Shown here one piece after another: positions 31,001-36,923 of a DNA stretch of 64,000 nucleotides. The number at the start of each line of letters is the position of its first letter. Position 1 is the stretch's first letter. The translations under genes and the position numbers were made by a program. The stretch is from Octopus bimaculoides (lineage: Eukaryota): contig NC_068981.1 in the NCBI RefSeq assembly GCF_001194135.2, forward strand, positions 44,126,735 to 44,190,734. The letters are read 5' to 3'. The notes beneath the pieces are model-generated. The model did not search any database, had not been told where the DNA came from, and saw nothing but the letters and a program-made list of their open reading frames with translations.

Positions 31001-33004
31001 AATCATGGAGCTGTTTTGATTCCAGCTACAGAAATTTCAAATTTACTCAACACAATTCATATATAACTTGAAGCATCATTCAATTCGGACTTGTCATCAT
31101 ATTCATGTGGTGTTGTGCTGGATGTCATTGTTGTATTAAGGATAGTTTTAGGACAATGAAACTATAATTGAGGAAGTGACAGCTCTTTCTGTTTTGTATA
31201 TTTGTCACCAGATAACCAAGTTTCATCACTTGGTAATGGATTATTATATTACAGTGATTATTGCGCACGTATTTACAAATATATATATATATATATATAT
31301 ATANNNNNNNNNNNNNNNNNNNNNNNNNNNNNNNNNNNNNNNNNNNNNNNNNNNNNNNNNNNNNNNNNNNNNNNNNNNNNNNNNNNNNNNNNNNNNNNNN
31401 NNNNNNNNNNNNNNNNNNNNNNNNNNNNNNNNNNNNNNNNNNNNNNNNNNTATGTGTGTGTGTGTGTGTTTACCTGTATGTGCATGTGTCAGTATGCGCG
31501 TGTACATATGGATAAACCAGTTTGGCTAGCGTAAGCTAGTATGACATGTATGGTCAAGCTATACGGCACATGATCGTCAGGTATATGTATTTAATTTCAT
31601 TGTTAGGTATTGATCTTAGGTAATAAGCATAGTCAAACTAAGAAAGCATTCATCAAAATGTTGTGTGTATAGCTACTACTCAACATTATTTAACTTTTTT
31701 TTAAATATGAACATCATTCATATCGGAAGCAAAAACACTTGAATTACATAATTTGCAATGTTCAAAACTGTTGCAGTAGACGTTTCTGTTTACGCAAATT
31801 ATACATTTTGATTGTGAGTGTGAAAACTCTCAAAAAGAGGAACCCATGTTGTTAATTTGTAGAATAATCCATTTTTCAAAAGACGTTTCTTTGATATATT
31901 AATACTTGCTGTCTCACACAACATTCTGTGTTCACTTTTTTCTGTTTCTTCAACCAAGGTTTGTTTCTTCACTAATATTTGCAACTGAATTTAATATACA
32001 ACCTTTATTCTTATTGAGAAAACATAACAAAACTTATATTGCATATTGATATTTTATACAATGCATATATTTCCTAAGGGAAGCATTAAATTCATGTTGA
32101 TTAGATACTATTAGAAATATTGTGAACTCTACCAGTTAAGGTTATATTCCATATACACTTGAAGTAGGTCCGTTATAAACATAATGTTCATCGTTTAGTG
32201 TTGAGCTGAATTGGATGTCGTTTGTTACAATTTAATGCCTGTGCACTTGTGATATTAAGAAGACTGATGTTCATCTTGAACATGTTCAGCTGGATGCTAT
32301 TGTTAAAACATAGTTGAGATGGACGCTTTGTGTTCTGACTTTCCATCACCTATGTCCTGCAGAGTAGGGCATGGTGATTGGAAGGAGAAATATATGAGAT
32401 GGGTGGATTCTATGAAACGCACAGTTCACTGTATCAATAGTGCTCCTAGCAGATGACGAGCGATGACATGTCATTTTCGGACACTGTGATATGTGCACAA
32501 GCTGGCAAGGATTACTTATAGGATATAGATTCGGTAGAATATTTAAGGTTGAAATTGTGAGTTAAATATTTATATAGTATGCTATAGAAAGGTTTATTTA
32601 ACTAGTATATGCTTTGCTTGTGTATGTGATTTGTGCATCCGAACTCTCGGTCCTATTGTGTAGAGGGTTTTGGAATCTGGTGTATAAGATTAATAGGGAT
32701 GAAGTTCTCGCACATATGTTTAATGGAATGCTACATGTTCTCATAGGAGTTTTAGTATGATTTTAACGGAAGAGTTAGTTATCACTCAATTTTCGCACTT
32801 TGACAGTAACACCGTCCCTGATAACATAGAGCTCTCTAATTTCAATCTCGCTGGAACACAAACCTTGATCAAGTGTTTGTACAAGTGATGGAATATTACA
32901 TCAATCGAGTATGTAGGATAATTCAAGTTTCAATACTTACTCTCCTATTCCCAGGAAACGTAACAGCCCTTCAGATCTGAAAAATATTGACATATAATCA
33001 ATTA

Positions 33005-33042
<38 letters not shown>

Positions 33043-33104
33043 NNNNNNNNNNNNNNNNNNNNNNNNNNNNNNNNNNNNNNNNNNNNNNNNNNNNNNNNNN
33101 NNNN

Positions 33105-33146
<42 letters not shown>

Positions 33147-33983
33147 AGGCAAGCAGAGTTAGTGGTTATGATAATAAGCTTGAGAAATTTTAGCCTGACA
33201 CAAGTATGAACTCCACCATCAACACCAACACGAAGTATGTGATGTTCAGAACATCGTTGACTGGCAAACAAAATCCAATTTATATATGTATGTGTGTAAA
33301 TGTATGCATATAAATATTTTTCAAATGCAATTAACAATTCACCAAATATGAAAAACGTTCAAATACAACGCAAAATTTACATTCAATTTATATGTGATGG
33401 AATATTGTCCTCTGTATGTATAATACCTGTTTAATCTGAACATTCACATTTATACACGGTATATGAAATTACTGAGATGTAGTAGCATAACAAGTGATTT
33501 GGTCTGAGATCGCGTGCTTAAACAAAAACTATTGCAGCGTGGAAGATATTTGTAAGCCATTTAAGAACACATAAAATCCGTTAATATCACTTGAACGTTT
33601 AAATTTAATTGGTATCAAAATATTTTCGTCGCATTGAAACCGCGACCTGTTCACTGACAAAACTTCGTGCTGCATGAATTATTGTCAGTGAACAGGTTGC
33701 AGTGAAACTATATGAAAGTGTTTTAAATATACTTACGCGATATTTCCCAAGAAACCAGAAAATGCGCCGCTTACACTAAAATGAAAGAATAAATTTACTA
33801 CATGAGTTATAGGATAAAAATGAAAACAAAAAAAACTTCATAGGGTATGATAAGCATTTTTTTAATCACTTATGTTTGACTTTGAATGTGATTTTAAGTA
33901 ATATTTGAATATATATATTTTTTTTAAATGGGCAGTTTATCCAATTTGCTATGCGCGAAATTGCGACCAATTAATTTCTCGTA

Positions 33984-34063
<80 letters not shown>

Positions 34064-36923
34064 GAAAGAAAGAGAGAGAGCAATAAGAAAATGGAGGGGA
34101 TTAATAGGTGGTATTCATGAACTTATAGACATTATGTTATGTCAAATTATTTGTTTATTTACTAAAAGAGCAATTATAATAATATACAAACGCATATTTC
34201 ATATTATTCCCTACATATATGATATAATATAATAATATATAAAATGAAAAATATAAAATATAAAATATCAGTAATTATAAAAATATAACATATAGTGATA
34301 GAAAATGGGATAATATCTTAAAGCTCTTTCAGTCTAGGGGTAAAACACCTCATTCTAACTTTATCACTCCAGTAAACTGAATAATTATTAGATGAAATAG
34401 AGGTACTTAGATGTTTCTCTAGGCCACATCAGAGAGATAAAAATCAAGGGTGTGTAGATTTTAGAACATTTATAAATAGGTCTCACTGCTGTTTCCAGAA
34501 TATTTATTATATCTCTTCATCGGAGACGGTGTGAGAAGATGGTTAAGCTATAGTTAATTTAGATAAGATACGAAATAGAGAGAGAGGTGGAGGAATGAAA
34601 ATAGATGAGAGATATACATGTATATATATACAGCCTTGATGTGAGATGTGAGATTTAGATGTATATATATATATATATATATATATGGATGTATCTCAGC
34701 CTACAAGACGACTGTTGTAATGTTCCAGCCTGCACCAGTAAATCCATATGTAGAACCAGCTATCTTGGTTGAAGGAACAATTTTGAAAGTGGTAGACGAG
34801 TTTGTCTAACTGGGGAGCACACTCAGCCGTTTTTGCTGCCTGGATGATGAAATATCTTTCAGGCTGCAGAGAGCAACTGATTCTTTCCGGTCTCTTGAGT
34901 CTTGTGTCTCGTCCCAACATCACAAGGCAAACTAAAATTGCTGTGTATCGTACATGTGTACTGGCATCGTTCCTTTACACATGTCGGACATGAACCCTTT
35001 ACAAACGTCATTTAGGTGTCCTTGAATGCTTTCATCAGAGATGTCTGAAACACATTCTGAATGTTGGTTGGACCTTAAAAGCTCTAGACACACAGGTCCC
35101 GAGGACAGCTGATATATTGAGTATTGAGGCGACGGTGCACAAACACTAGCTATGTTGGACTGGACACCTTATTAGAAGGAAAGATAGCAGGATCCTTAAA
35201 CAGATGCTATACGGAGAACTAGTTAATGGAAAGAGACCCCGGCAGAAACCAAGGCTGCGATTTAAGGACTGTGTCATGTACTCATTAAAGGCCTGTGATA
35301 TGTAGGTGACTGACTAGGAGAACAATGCCTGTGATCGTCACAAATGAAGGAAGCAGGTTGAGGAGGGGGAAACACCTTTGAGAAAGCACGTATTCTGCAT
35401 GAAAAAGTTTAGCGTGCAGCTCCAAGGCGCATGAAGAAAGCTTGGTTTGCAATGTTTGCAGTCGTGTATGCTTGTCAAAGGTTCATCTGCTATAATAGAG
35501 CCGCGAATGCAAAATATAAGTTAGTCACAGAGCACACAATGTTCCTGAAGGTCAGCAACAGTCTTTCTCAGACGGCCATCATAGACATATATATTTATAT
35601 ACATACATATATAATTTATATGTATTTATGCATATATATGTACGTATGCATGTATGTGGATGTAAAGAAATGCTATTCTTTATAATTTTATCTACTTTCA
35701 GTCCCAAAGTTTAATGGATACTTATTTTGCCCATATACCTAAAAATGATATTGTTATAGGGTACAGTTTTCACATTAATATAATATAAAATTCAATAACT
35801 TACATATCTAGTGTCGCTTTGCCAAGACGAGCTCTGTAAAGGAAAACAATAAATAAATAAAATACATGATAAATGAAATATAGAGAAATTTATGTATAGA
35901 CACAGACACATATTACTAACACAGTAGCGCCACCTAGAAAAGTATTTATATTAATTATTTTAGGAGACCATGGACCACTCAAGCAGAAAGTTGTTCTTGG
36001 CTGAGACATATCCAGGTGTAGGTGGTTTACCGGGTATTTCCTGGATGATTTTGCTCAGGTACCGTTTTAAAGTTGTAGGGCGTTTTCTACTTTAATTTCT
36101 TTTGAGATATATAACGTTCTTTACGTTACATACATCAATTCATTGAACCTTCATAAAATACACCTTTTAGATTCTTTCGTTCACCACTTCACCTTAAATT
36201 ATTAAGTTGGAAATAAAACCTCATATGTTTGGCAATAAATTTGAAGTGTGTTATTATTTACTATAAGATATGCATTCATTTATATTTACATTCTAATGCT
36301 TTTGTTCCTTAACAGATTACTTCAAAGCATAGTACTTTCCAAATTGATAAAGATTATATTCTTTAAAAACTAGTTTAGAACTAACTTTAACACGTGCGTG
36401 CATGCGCAGGGGTGTGGGCGTATGTAAATGAGTATGTGTTTATATAATTGTGAAGGTATACAGAGCACATTCAACATTAATATTACATAATCAAGTATAA
36501 CTCACATGGCGCGTTTGCTCCTGACTGATCGTTTTGGCCTGTAAACAAACGAACATAACTCATTAATAAATCAAATATGACGGTAATCAAGTATATANNN
36601 NNNNNNNNNNNNNNNNNNNNNNNNNNNNNNNNNNNNNNNNNNNNNNNNNNNNNNNNNNNNNNNNNNNNNNNNNNNNNNNNNNNNNNNNNNNNNNNNNNNN
36701 NNNNNNNNNNNNNNNNNNNNNNNNNNNNNNNNNNNNNNNNNNNNNNNNNNNNNNNNNNNNNNNNNNNNNNNNNNNNNNNNNNNNNNNNNNNNNNNNNNNN
36801 NNNNNNNNNNNNNNNNNNNNNNNNNNNNNNNNNNNNNNNNNNNNNNNNNNNNNNNNNNNNNNNNNNNNNNNNNNNNNNNNNNNNNNNNNNNNNNNNNNNN
36901 NNNNNNNNNNNNNNNNNNNNNNN

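Follow-up and report, generated by a model that had tools for sequence, protein, structure and literature searches.

We analyzed a 64,000-nt window of the Octopus bimaculoides genome (RefSeq assembly GCF_001194135.2, contig NC_068981.1, positions 44,126,735 to 44,190,734), an AT-rich stretch (~31% GC) in which microsatellites are abundant, 12 N gaps and remains of transposons occur and long genuine open reading frames (ORFs) are lacking, and which carries the gene LOC106876345 on its minus strand. The coding span of this gene (25855..44828; positions are those of the window, and all its exons lie on the minus strand) comprises 14 coding exons with GT-AG introns throughout, and their spliced join reproduces, residue for residue, the 284-aa RefSeq entry XP_014780332.2, "uncharacterized protein LOC106876345 [Octopus bimaculoides]". 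LOC106876345 is a real annotated gene, already in RefSeq as "uncharacterized". Searches of the literature by LOC, XP and UniProt identifiers, and for micro-exon gene together with octopus, returned no papers on LOC106876345, and no expression data were found.

A fourteen-exon gene with symmetric microexons

Exons 5-8 are GT-AG microexons of 33, 30, 39 and 36 nt that can be read directly from the window as (R)PKRSVRSKR followed by AIARLGKATLDIVSGAFSGFLGNIASEGLLRFLGIG; joined, they run from R123 through PKR126-SV-R129SKR132 and AIARLGK to FLGIG168 (full translation off the minus strand, PKRSVRSKRAIARLGKATLDIVSGAFSGFLGNIASEGLLRFLGIG). A first-pass annotation of this DNA, made from the letters and a list of ORFs, had proposed these four microexons, and they are real: their letters, phase and numbering up to G168 match the RefSeq protein, with which its numbering of C49, C104 and R123-R132 also agrees. 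All four have a pyrimidine tract and a YAG acceptor on their 5' side and a GTAAGT or GTGAGT donor on their 3' side, every length is divisible by three, and all share one phase. Their base composition (46-55% GC, with 9 CpG in 138 nt) stands apart from that of the 300-nt flanks (29-31% GC).

A crude splice-site and ORF scan by itself returned ~20 same-phase symmetric candidates per strand in the 64 kb, so that splice sites and an open frame are insufficient evidence, and GC contrast and homology are needed in addition. Once a GC-contrast filter was applied, exons 5-8 were the sole splice-bounded candidates in ~13 kb. The 45-aa microexon peptide alone found no match in a word-indexed protein search, a false negative to which short queries are prone. 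Further exons were obtained by extending outward in the same phase from exons 5-8, and a protein search with the extended chain (209 aa) retrieved XP_014780332.2.

Exon 1 (44779..44828, 50 nt) supplies the start codon and a signal-peptide-like N-terminus, MRGYIICFLIILYLSYT(FS/AKE). Exons 2 (42736-42653), 3 (41133-41038) and 4 (38089-37952) encode a conserved N-terminal helical half (residues 18-123) that contains C49 and C104; exon 4 ends in CG, and R123 is completed by the first base of exon 5 (36538-36506), which continues through two furin/proprotein convertase (PC) consensus sites in overlapping context to A133. Exon 6 (35833-35804), (I)ARLGKATLD, forms the first and more amphipathic part of the ensuing segment, exon 7 (33775-33737), (I)VSGAFSGFLGNI(A), its hydrophobic Gly-rich core, and exon 8 (32976-32941), SEGLLRFLGIG(D), a second xFLG motif. 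Exons 9 (30921-30898; NADSSAK) and 10 (28903-28877; VRNVNDWK) are likewise symmetric microexons and encode a polar linker. Exons 11 (27565-27512) and 12 (27290-27198) make up a conserved C-terminal helical half (M187-K235) with C222. Exon 13 (26984-26917, 68 nt) encodes FC237NIKSQSLDKHDLESNPDPTS plus a final G, with the donor G/GTTAGT, and exon 14 (25937-25855, 83 nt including the stop codon) completes the protein as (G258)ARAKMSPTFSFTAVVIYTFFLACTFY, a tail resembling a glycosylphosphatidylinositol (GPI) attachment signal. Exons 2-12 (84, 96, 138, 33, 30, 39, 36, 24, 27, 54 and 93 nt) are all symmetric, with phase-2 introns.

One assembly gap (33043-33104) falls in intron 7, in a non-coding (AT)n microsatellite that stops 27 nt short of the exon-8 acceptor. 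An (AT)n tract is found in the same position at two gap-free loci, L002 of O. bimaculoides and L001 of O. sinensis, where exon 7 is spliced in frame to exon 8; the coding sequence is therefore unaffected by the gap. The remaining gaps within the gene are also intronic, and no hidden exon is needed because the protein is colinear with its paralogues. The gene region is identical, gaps included, to GCA_001194135.2 CM046601.1:44149589-44174562. The same exon set occurs at five other loci, making six loci in two species, and at least six loci of the two species preserve 13-14 intact exons with GT-AG introns and open frames, at synonymous divergences (dS) of 0.2-0.46.

Protein architecture, cleavage motif and Gly-rich segment

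Structure prediction with AlphaFold was unusable when seeded with 7 close sequences (mean predicted local distance difference test score, pLDDT, 34), and reached medium confidence with a 12-sequence alignment (mean pLDDT 69; predicted template modelling score, pTM, 0.67). The resulting model is all-alpha. Helices at residues 35-47, 53-69, 76-92 and 95-110 (pLDDT 81-90) are followed by a flexible loop (111-138), a helix at 139-158 (pLDDT ~54-77) and the polar linker, and then by a long helix (191-223), a short one (231-237; both pLDDT 75-90) and a tail helix. The four cysteines C49, C104, C222 and C237 are invariant, as are W184 and other columns. Two of them precede the basic motif and two follow it, the arrangement that the first-pass annotation had described; its numbers for the downstream pair, C196 and C211, were wrong because exons 9 and 10 had been overlooked.

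Both termini have features of a secreted, anchored protein. The N-terminus, MRGYIICFLIILYLSYTFS/A, shows the n/h/c pattern of a signal peptide (Kyte-Doolittle 19-residue peak 1.5 at residues 10-14), judged by pattern. At the C-terminus, inspection finds the small residues S257-G258-A259 expected around an omega site, the 7-residue spacer RAKMSPT (5-10 being usual) and an 18-residue hydrophobic end (15-20 being usual), FSFTAVVIYTFFLACTFY, with nothing after it that could form a cytosolic tail; the Kyte-Doolittle peak of the tail is 1.6, at residues 272-275. G258 is invariant across an alignment of 20 sequences (A2), and A259 and K262 are invariant in a second alignment (A1) and conserved in at least 90% of A2. 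The distant paralogue P0013 has a transmembrane (TM) helix and YHYRRK in place of the GPI-like tail. With an anchor signal in close paralogues and a TM helix in P0013, C-terminal membrane anchoring therefore looks like a family trait, and paralogue P0007 is without a hydrophobic tail.

The idea that a C-terminal Gly serves as an amidation donor falls away, since that Gly arose from reading through the exon-13 donor (G/GT TAG), past which the protein continues as ARAKMSPTFSFTAVVIYTFFLACTFY. Retention of this intron (donor at 26912-26917, minus strand) would nonetheless end the protein at ...SG, lacking the anchor signal; the donor reads the same at L001 and L002, and this is where the O. vulgaris model P0023 stops. 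A tail-less product of such read-through could possibly be a soluble isoform, or the match a coincidence of the donor consensus.

The two R-X-K-R motifs of furin/PC type, RPKR126 and RSKR132, are present as first annotated, and differ in their conservation. R129, K131 and R132 are invariant in the 20 close family sequences of A2, and an R-X-[KR]-R motif occupies a single alignment column in 8/8 full-length members and occurs nowhere else in those proteins. These eight include two distant paralogues just 35-38% identical, in which it reads RRKR followed by R and RTKR followed by A. The upstream motif, RPKR126, has a counterpart only in LOC115220522 of O. sinensis. Among shuffles of XP_014780332.2, at least one site arose with a probability of 0.09 and at least two with a probability of 0.003. 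Residues 122-133 have pLDDT <50 and are modelled as a loop between confident helices, as would suit an exposed site. O. bimaculoides is among the genomes surveyed for kexin-like convertase genes (10.1101/802215). Together, these observations make cleavage at RxKR132 by a furin-type convertase a well-supported prediction. The RxKR site is present family-wide, and the hydrophobic helix downstream of it is confined to one subfamily.

Directly after the site, as the first-pass annotation had noticed, lies a moderately hydrophobic segment with 7 Gly in 36 residues (19%) and the conserved motif FxGFLGNIAS(D/E)(G/A)LxxFLG(I/V)G. F149, F152 and L153 are invariant among the seven non-skipping sequences of A1 and conserved in at least 90% of the 20 in A2, in which L161, L165, G166 and G168 are invariant. 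The amphipathic character claimed for this segment is moderate: its maximum 18-residue hydrophobic moment is 0.30-0.55 and rises clearly above shuffles in some paralogues only (p 0.007 to 0.33). Its Kyte-Doolittle hydropathy (0.95-1.44) stays below TM level. On the Wimley-White interfacial scale the core F149-I167 sums to -2.5 to -3.2 kcal/mol in 5/6 close paralogues, where reference sequences of fusion peptides and melittin give -1.0 to -3.6. The segment carries a net charge of 0 to -2 and has no basic processing site after it, two features that argue against the released cationic antimicrobial peptide first envisaged; a tethered, interfacially active helix is left open by these values. The two distant full-length paralogues have a non-hydrophobic stretch in its place. 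Several resemblances of the segment were considered and dropped: Tim17-like GAFxxG and FUN14-like SSGFVGGFLLG clash with a secretory architecture and have no Pfam match, the spacing of a BH3-like LxxxGD does not fit, and neuropeptides of DH31/CRF type would need flanking sites that are missing here.

Tuning of this helix by microexon skipping, another suggestion of the first-pass annotation, is supported at annotation level in sister genes. The exon-7 equivalent (13 aa) is exactly absent from isoform X2 of O. sinensis LOC115220522 and from O. vulgaris CAI9733803.1, and the exon-6 equivalent (10 aa) from isoforms X3 and X4 of O. bimaculoides LOC106881480. Exon 3 is skipped in isoform X3 of LOC106881475, and an alternative acceptor at exon 9 gains or loses one Ser in paralogue isoforms. 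No alternative isoforms of LOC106876345 itself are annotated. Isoforms and distant paralogues in which the helix is deleted or replaced retain both conserved halves of the protein. Separately, a core GTTTC(T/C)TGGGAA is found in both exon 7 and exon 8, about equally far from their GTAAGTAT donors, which are identical (p=0.002 by shuffling, 15 exon pairs); this core and the xFLG motif common to the two exons hint that the cassette may have grown by microexon duplication.

Family range, rate of evolution and surrounding elements

The family is small and confined to Octopus; nothing related to it could be detected elsewhere. When 1.84 billion representatives were searched exhaustively with an HMMER profile, 7 clusters were returned, and a profile word search of 5.8 billion clusters returned 12, all of them from O. 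bimaculoides, O. sinensis or O. vulgaris. No Pfam domain was found with the microexon peptide, the extended model or in later searches, no sequence relative was found in the PDB, and Foldseek against PDB and BFVD gave nothing at E<=0.001; no fold or sequence relative from these searches backs pore-forming or fusion activity. Rows for ClyA, Hbl-B and YaxB (E=0.8-3.2, TM score 0.11-0.15; best ClyA row E=0.79, TM score 0.13) are at noise level and were not used as evidence. The all-alpha model and the lack of a Pfam or PDB match agree with the earlier remark that no actinoporin beta-sandwich is present.

Members of this family diverge rapidly. Nei-Gojobori ratios of nonsynonymous to synonymous divergence (dN/dS) span 0.45-1.04 across pairs, the highest for P0025 vs P0007, and come to 0.69 when three putative ortholog pairs are summed. 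Region by region, dN/dS is 0.52 in the N-terminal half (residues 30-115), 0.45-0.66 in the hydrophobic segment and ~0.8-1.1 in the polar linker, and exceeds 1 just upstream of the RxKR site, where counts are tiny. The N-terminal half had been cast as a pro-region masking a mature chain of ~100 aa; it is the best-conserved part of the protein and the best predicted (pLDDT 81-90), and resembles a partner domain more than a propeptide to be discarded.

When exons 2-13 of the window were compared with those of L001 and L002, exon identity was slightly lower than that of alignable 200-nt flanking introns (0.837 vs 0.878, p=0.004; 0.816 vs 0.844, p=0.085). Microexons 5-10 show 74-80% identity vs 84-88% for their flanking introns. 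Exon divergence in excess of introns is unusual, and consistent with diversifying or relaxed selection. Because open frames and splice sites are retained in all loci, the genes are functional yet fast-evolving, a pattern that they share with effector genes, with genes of immunity and reproduction, and with schistosome micro-exon genes (MEGs).

The genomic placement of the family was also noted. Three close O. sinensis paralogues (L001, L004 and L005) form a ~140-kb cluster on CM016874.1 (20.03-20.17 Mb), whose middle gene is the closest match of LOC106876345. In O. bimaculoides, L002 and L006 are adjacent on CM046615.1 (55.09-55.14 Mb), and LOC106876345 lies elsewhere, on CM046601.1 at 44.15 Mb. 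Its position on a separate chromosome-scale record would reflect either a translocation or an assembly difference.

Elsewhere in the window, several open stretches resemble transposon sequence. Within intron 6, on the plus strand, a decayed stretch with stops (34700-35560) translates as …LCWTGHLIRRKDSRILKQMLYGELVNGKRPRQKPRLRFKDC…, which resembles the C-terminal tail of a reverse-transcriptase ORF of the long interspersed nuclear element type; Pfam gave no match to this translation at E<=0.1. An ORF on the minus strand (22192-23364), broken by a 686-nt gap, contains the motif GEL..GKR..KPKKRFKD, similar to the 34700-35560 stretch, followed by a C2H2-like zinc finger (Pfam zf-C2HE and zf-C2H2, both matching under their cut-offs), and is probably another retroelement fragment. 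GC-richer open stretches at ~51400-52400 (minus) and 54000-60000 (plus), for example …DYYVWRAVVRVTNETPRNTEDELNARI…, resemble the end of a mariner/Tc1-type transposase, with several reverse-transcriptase-like open frames nearby. Pfam returned no curated match for the repeat-like ORFs, a weak HTH_29 hit aside.

A candidate processed surface protein and its parallels

Collectively, these features are best explained, in our judgment, if LOC106876345 encodes a secretory, convertase-processed, GPI-anchored two-chain helical protein whose anchored chain starts at A133 and bears an optional, alternatively spliced hydrophobic Gly-rich helix, a reading that we consider probable. We infer the signal peptide, the cleavage, the GPI anchor and any membrane activity from the sequence. 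The product would enter the secretory pathway by its signal peptide and fold into an all-alpha body, with a conserved N-terminal half (C49, C104) and a conserved C-terminal half (C222, C237) that ends in a GPI-type anchor signal. A flexible linker with the conserved R-X-K-R would join both halves, and a furin-like convertase would cut it after R132 and, in LOC106876345, perhaps after R126 too. The cut would yield a two-chain surface protein, of which the GPI-anchored C-terminal fragment, ~125 aa plus the anchor signal, would bear the helix FxGFLGNIAS(D/E)GLxxFLG(I/V)G. This helix would be a dispensable, alternatively spliced cassette, given that exon 6 or 7 is skipped in sister genes and that more distant paralogues lack or replace it; as a cassette, its presence would be decided by splicing, and with it the presence of a membrane- or partner-binding hydrophobic element on the cleaved protein. 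The rapid evolution of the family points to a role at a recognition or conflict interface, for example in gametes, immunity or secretion.

Several points weigh against this reading. The model is of medium confidence, and helix 139-158 may or may not pack on the bundle; cleavage, GPI anchoring and the signal peptide follow from sequence rules, and the skipping isoforms are RefSeq or European Nucleotide Archive (ENA) gene models of sister genes. The hydrophobic core begins 16 residues past the cut and not at the new N-terminus, and the dN/dS of the segment is not above that of the rest of the protein, so the segment is not the main target of diversification.

The same segment could instead serve a structural purpose in the bundle, or mediate contact between proteins, and never be exposed to a membrane, with the RxKR cut an ordinary maturation step or not made at all. 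We regard this as unlikely, though credible enough to keep in view: helix 139-158 is placed at pLDDT ~67-77 in a one-body model with pTM 0.67, its hydropathy falls under the usual TM threshold, its hydrophobic moment does not stand out in half the paralogues, and it is somewhat more constrained than its neighbors. A core structural helix should not be optional, however, and both halves are retained where this one is deleted or replaced; GFLG...FLGxG with its 19% Gly would also be odd for a packed soluble helix. That the features are annotation artefacts in neutrally evolving DNA, and the gene model decaying or non-functional, appears very improbable. Such decay would account for dN/dS near 1 in some pairs (1.04 for P0025 vs P0007), for exons no better conserved than introns, and for the absence from the searched collection of any transcript-derived protein copy beyond NCBI models, but not for the 13-14 intact exons with open frames at six or more loci in two species, for the invariance of the four cysteines, RxKR, W184 and other columns, or for exons distinct from their flanks in GC and CpG content.

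The first-pass annotation itself had favored a precursor from which a membrane-active peptide or toxin, antimicrobial or pore-forming, is released: a disposable pro-region would be removed from a soluble amphipathic chain amidated at its C-terminal Gly. An RxKR site immediately before an amphipathic Gly-rich stretch would suit such a precursor, as would a fast-evolving, lineage-restricted family of the kind often seen for toxin and effector genes, and a soluble tail-less isoform is conceivable from the exon-13 read-through (...TSG-stop in three loci, and the end of P0023) and from the missing tail of P0007. Without a basic site after the segment, however, no short peptide could be released; the charge is unlike that of cationic antimicrobial peptides, the annotated C-terminus is a hydrophobic anchor signal and not a Gly, conservation and predicted folding are at their best in the very part supposed to be the pro-region, and ClyA-type, actinoporin and other pore-formers gave no significant fold match (best ClyA E=0.79, TM score 0.13). 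We therefore judge a released peptide improbable.

If the reading as an anchored two-chain protein is right, LOC106876345 would provide a clean cephalopod case of microexon-cassette protein variation, so far described for flatworm MEGs, and a lineage-born surface protein that mimics viral fusogen activation with no detectable viral ancestry; it would be a candidate for some function in recognition or at membranes in octopuses. Should the helix prove merely structural, LOC106876345 would be an ordinary fast-evolving orphan. A bolder extension, to which we would give little chance, is an octopus-born, furin-primed, GPI-tethered membrane-active protein, which could be a minimal cellular fusogen or a surface-tethered perturbant of membranes, acting where interfaces evolve fast, in gamete contact or immune defence for example. 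Its fusion-peptide-like helix would be switched or resized by cassette microexon skipping. This extension would combine a MEG-like variation system outside flatworms with a class-I-fusogen-like activation logic of an origin independent of viruses.

Schistosome MEGs offer one parallel. Their products have a signal peptide and are secreted or membrane-anchored, and very small symmetric exons between long introns are skipped to give proteins that differ by few residues (PMC4350168). As orphan genes with high dN/dS they are reported to be confined to one lineage, the platyhelminths, and they are defined by having most of the coding region in microexons (PMC4350168). LOC106876345 is alike in its predicted signal peptide, its exons 5-10 of 24-39 nt, the symmetry of exons 2-12, the skipped isoforms of its paralogues (exons 6, 7 and 3) and a dN/dS of ~0.6-0.7. 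It differs in that exons of <=39 nt account for only 189/855 coding nt (22%), that its protein has two sizeable conserved helical halves, and that the family, found only in Octopus, has no sequence similarity to platyhelminth families.

A second parallel is with proteins that merge membranes. In class I fusion proteins (human immunodeficiency virus gp160, the F protein of respiratory syncytial virus (RSV), retroviral Env) and syncytins, furin cuts directly upstream of a Gly-rich hydrophobic stretch with FLG motifs, and the downstream fragment is membrane-anchored; RSV F has tandem cleavage sites. The octopus protein likewise places a convertase site upstream of a hydrophobic Gly-rich peptide on a fragment predicted to be anchored, and its tandem RPKR126/RSKR132 recall RSV F. 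Unlike these proteins it is far smaller, with a C-terminal fragment of ~125 aa and a GPI-type anchor; it has no long heptad repeats or predicted trimeric coiled coil, 191-223 being its only long helix; 16 residues separate its hydrophobic core from the new N-terminus; it has no BFVD or PDB fold match (E<=0.001); and its gene is intron-rich and not retroviral.

Other systems share less. The prion protein (PrP) and Shadoo have a signal peptide, a hydrophobic tract rich in Gly and Ala with an endoproteolytic cut just before it, a helical domain containing a single Cys pair, and a GPI anchor, so that the likeness extends to overall architecture only, with no sequence or fold similarity found. In PrP the N-terminal part is disordered, alpha-cleavage is not by furin and the family is vertebrate, whereas the N-terminal part of the octopus protein is modelled as a folded helical half. 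Helical pore-formers such as ClyA, Hbl-B, YaxB and those of colicin type are all-alpha bundles with one hydrophobic helix or hairpin, which in the octopus protein too could swing out; the fold comparisons are non-significant, however, a GPI anchor is atypical for a toxin and the segment is below TM hydrophobicity. Actinoporins differ in pairing a beta-sandwich with an N-terminal amphipathic helix, where the octopus model is all-alpha, and cationic antimicrobial precursors differ in charge (0 to -2 here), in having a downstream basic site and in a C-terminal Gly that at this locus is an artefact of read-through. By analogy, then, LOC106876345 would work like a cross between a micro-exon gene and class-I-fusogen-style activation, as a member of neither.

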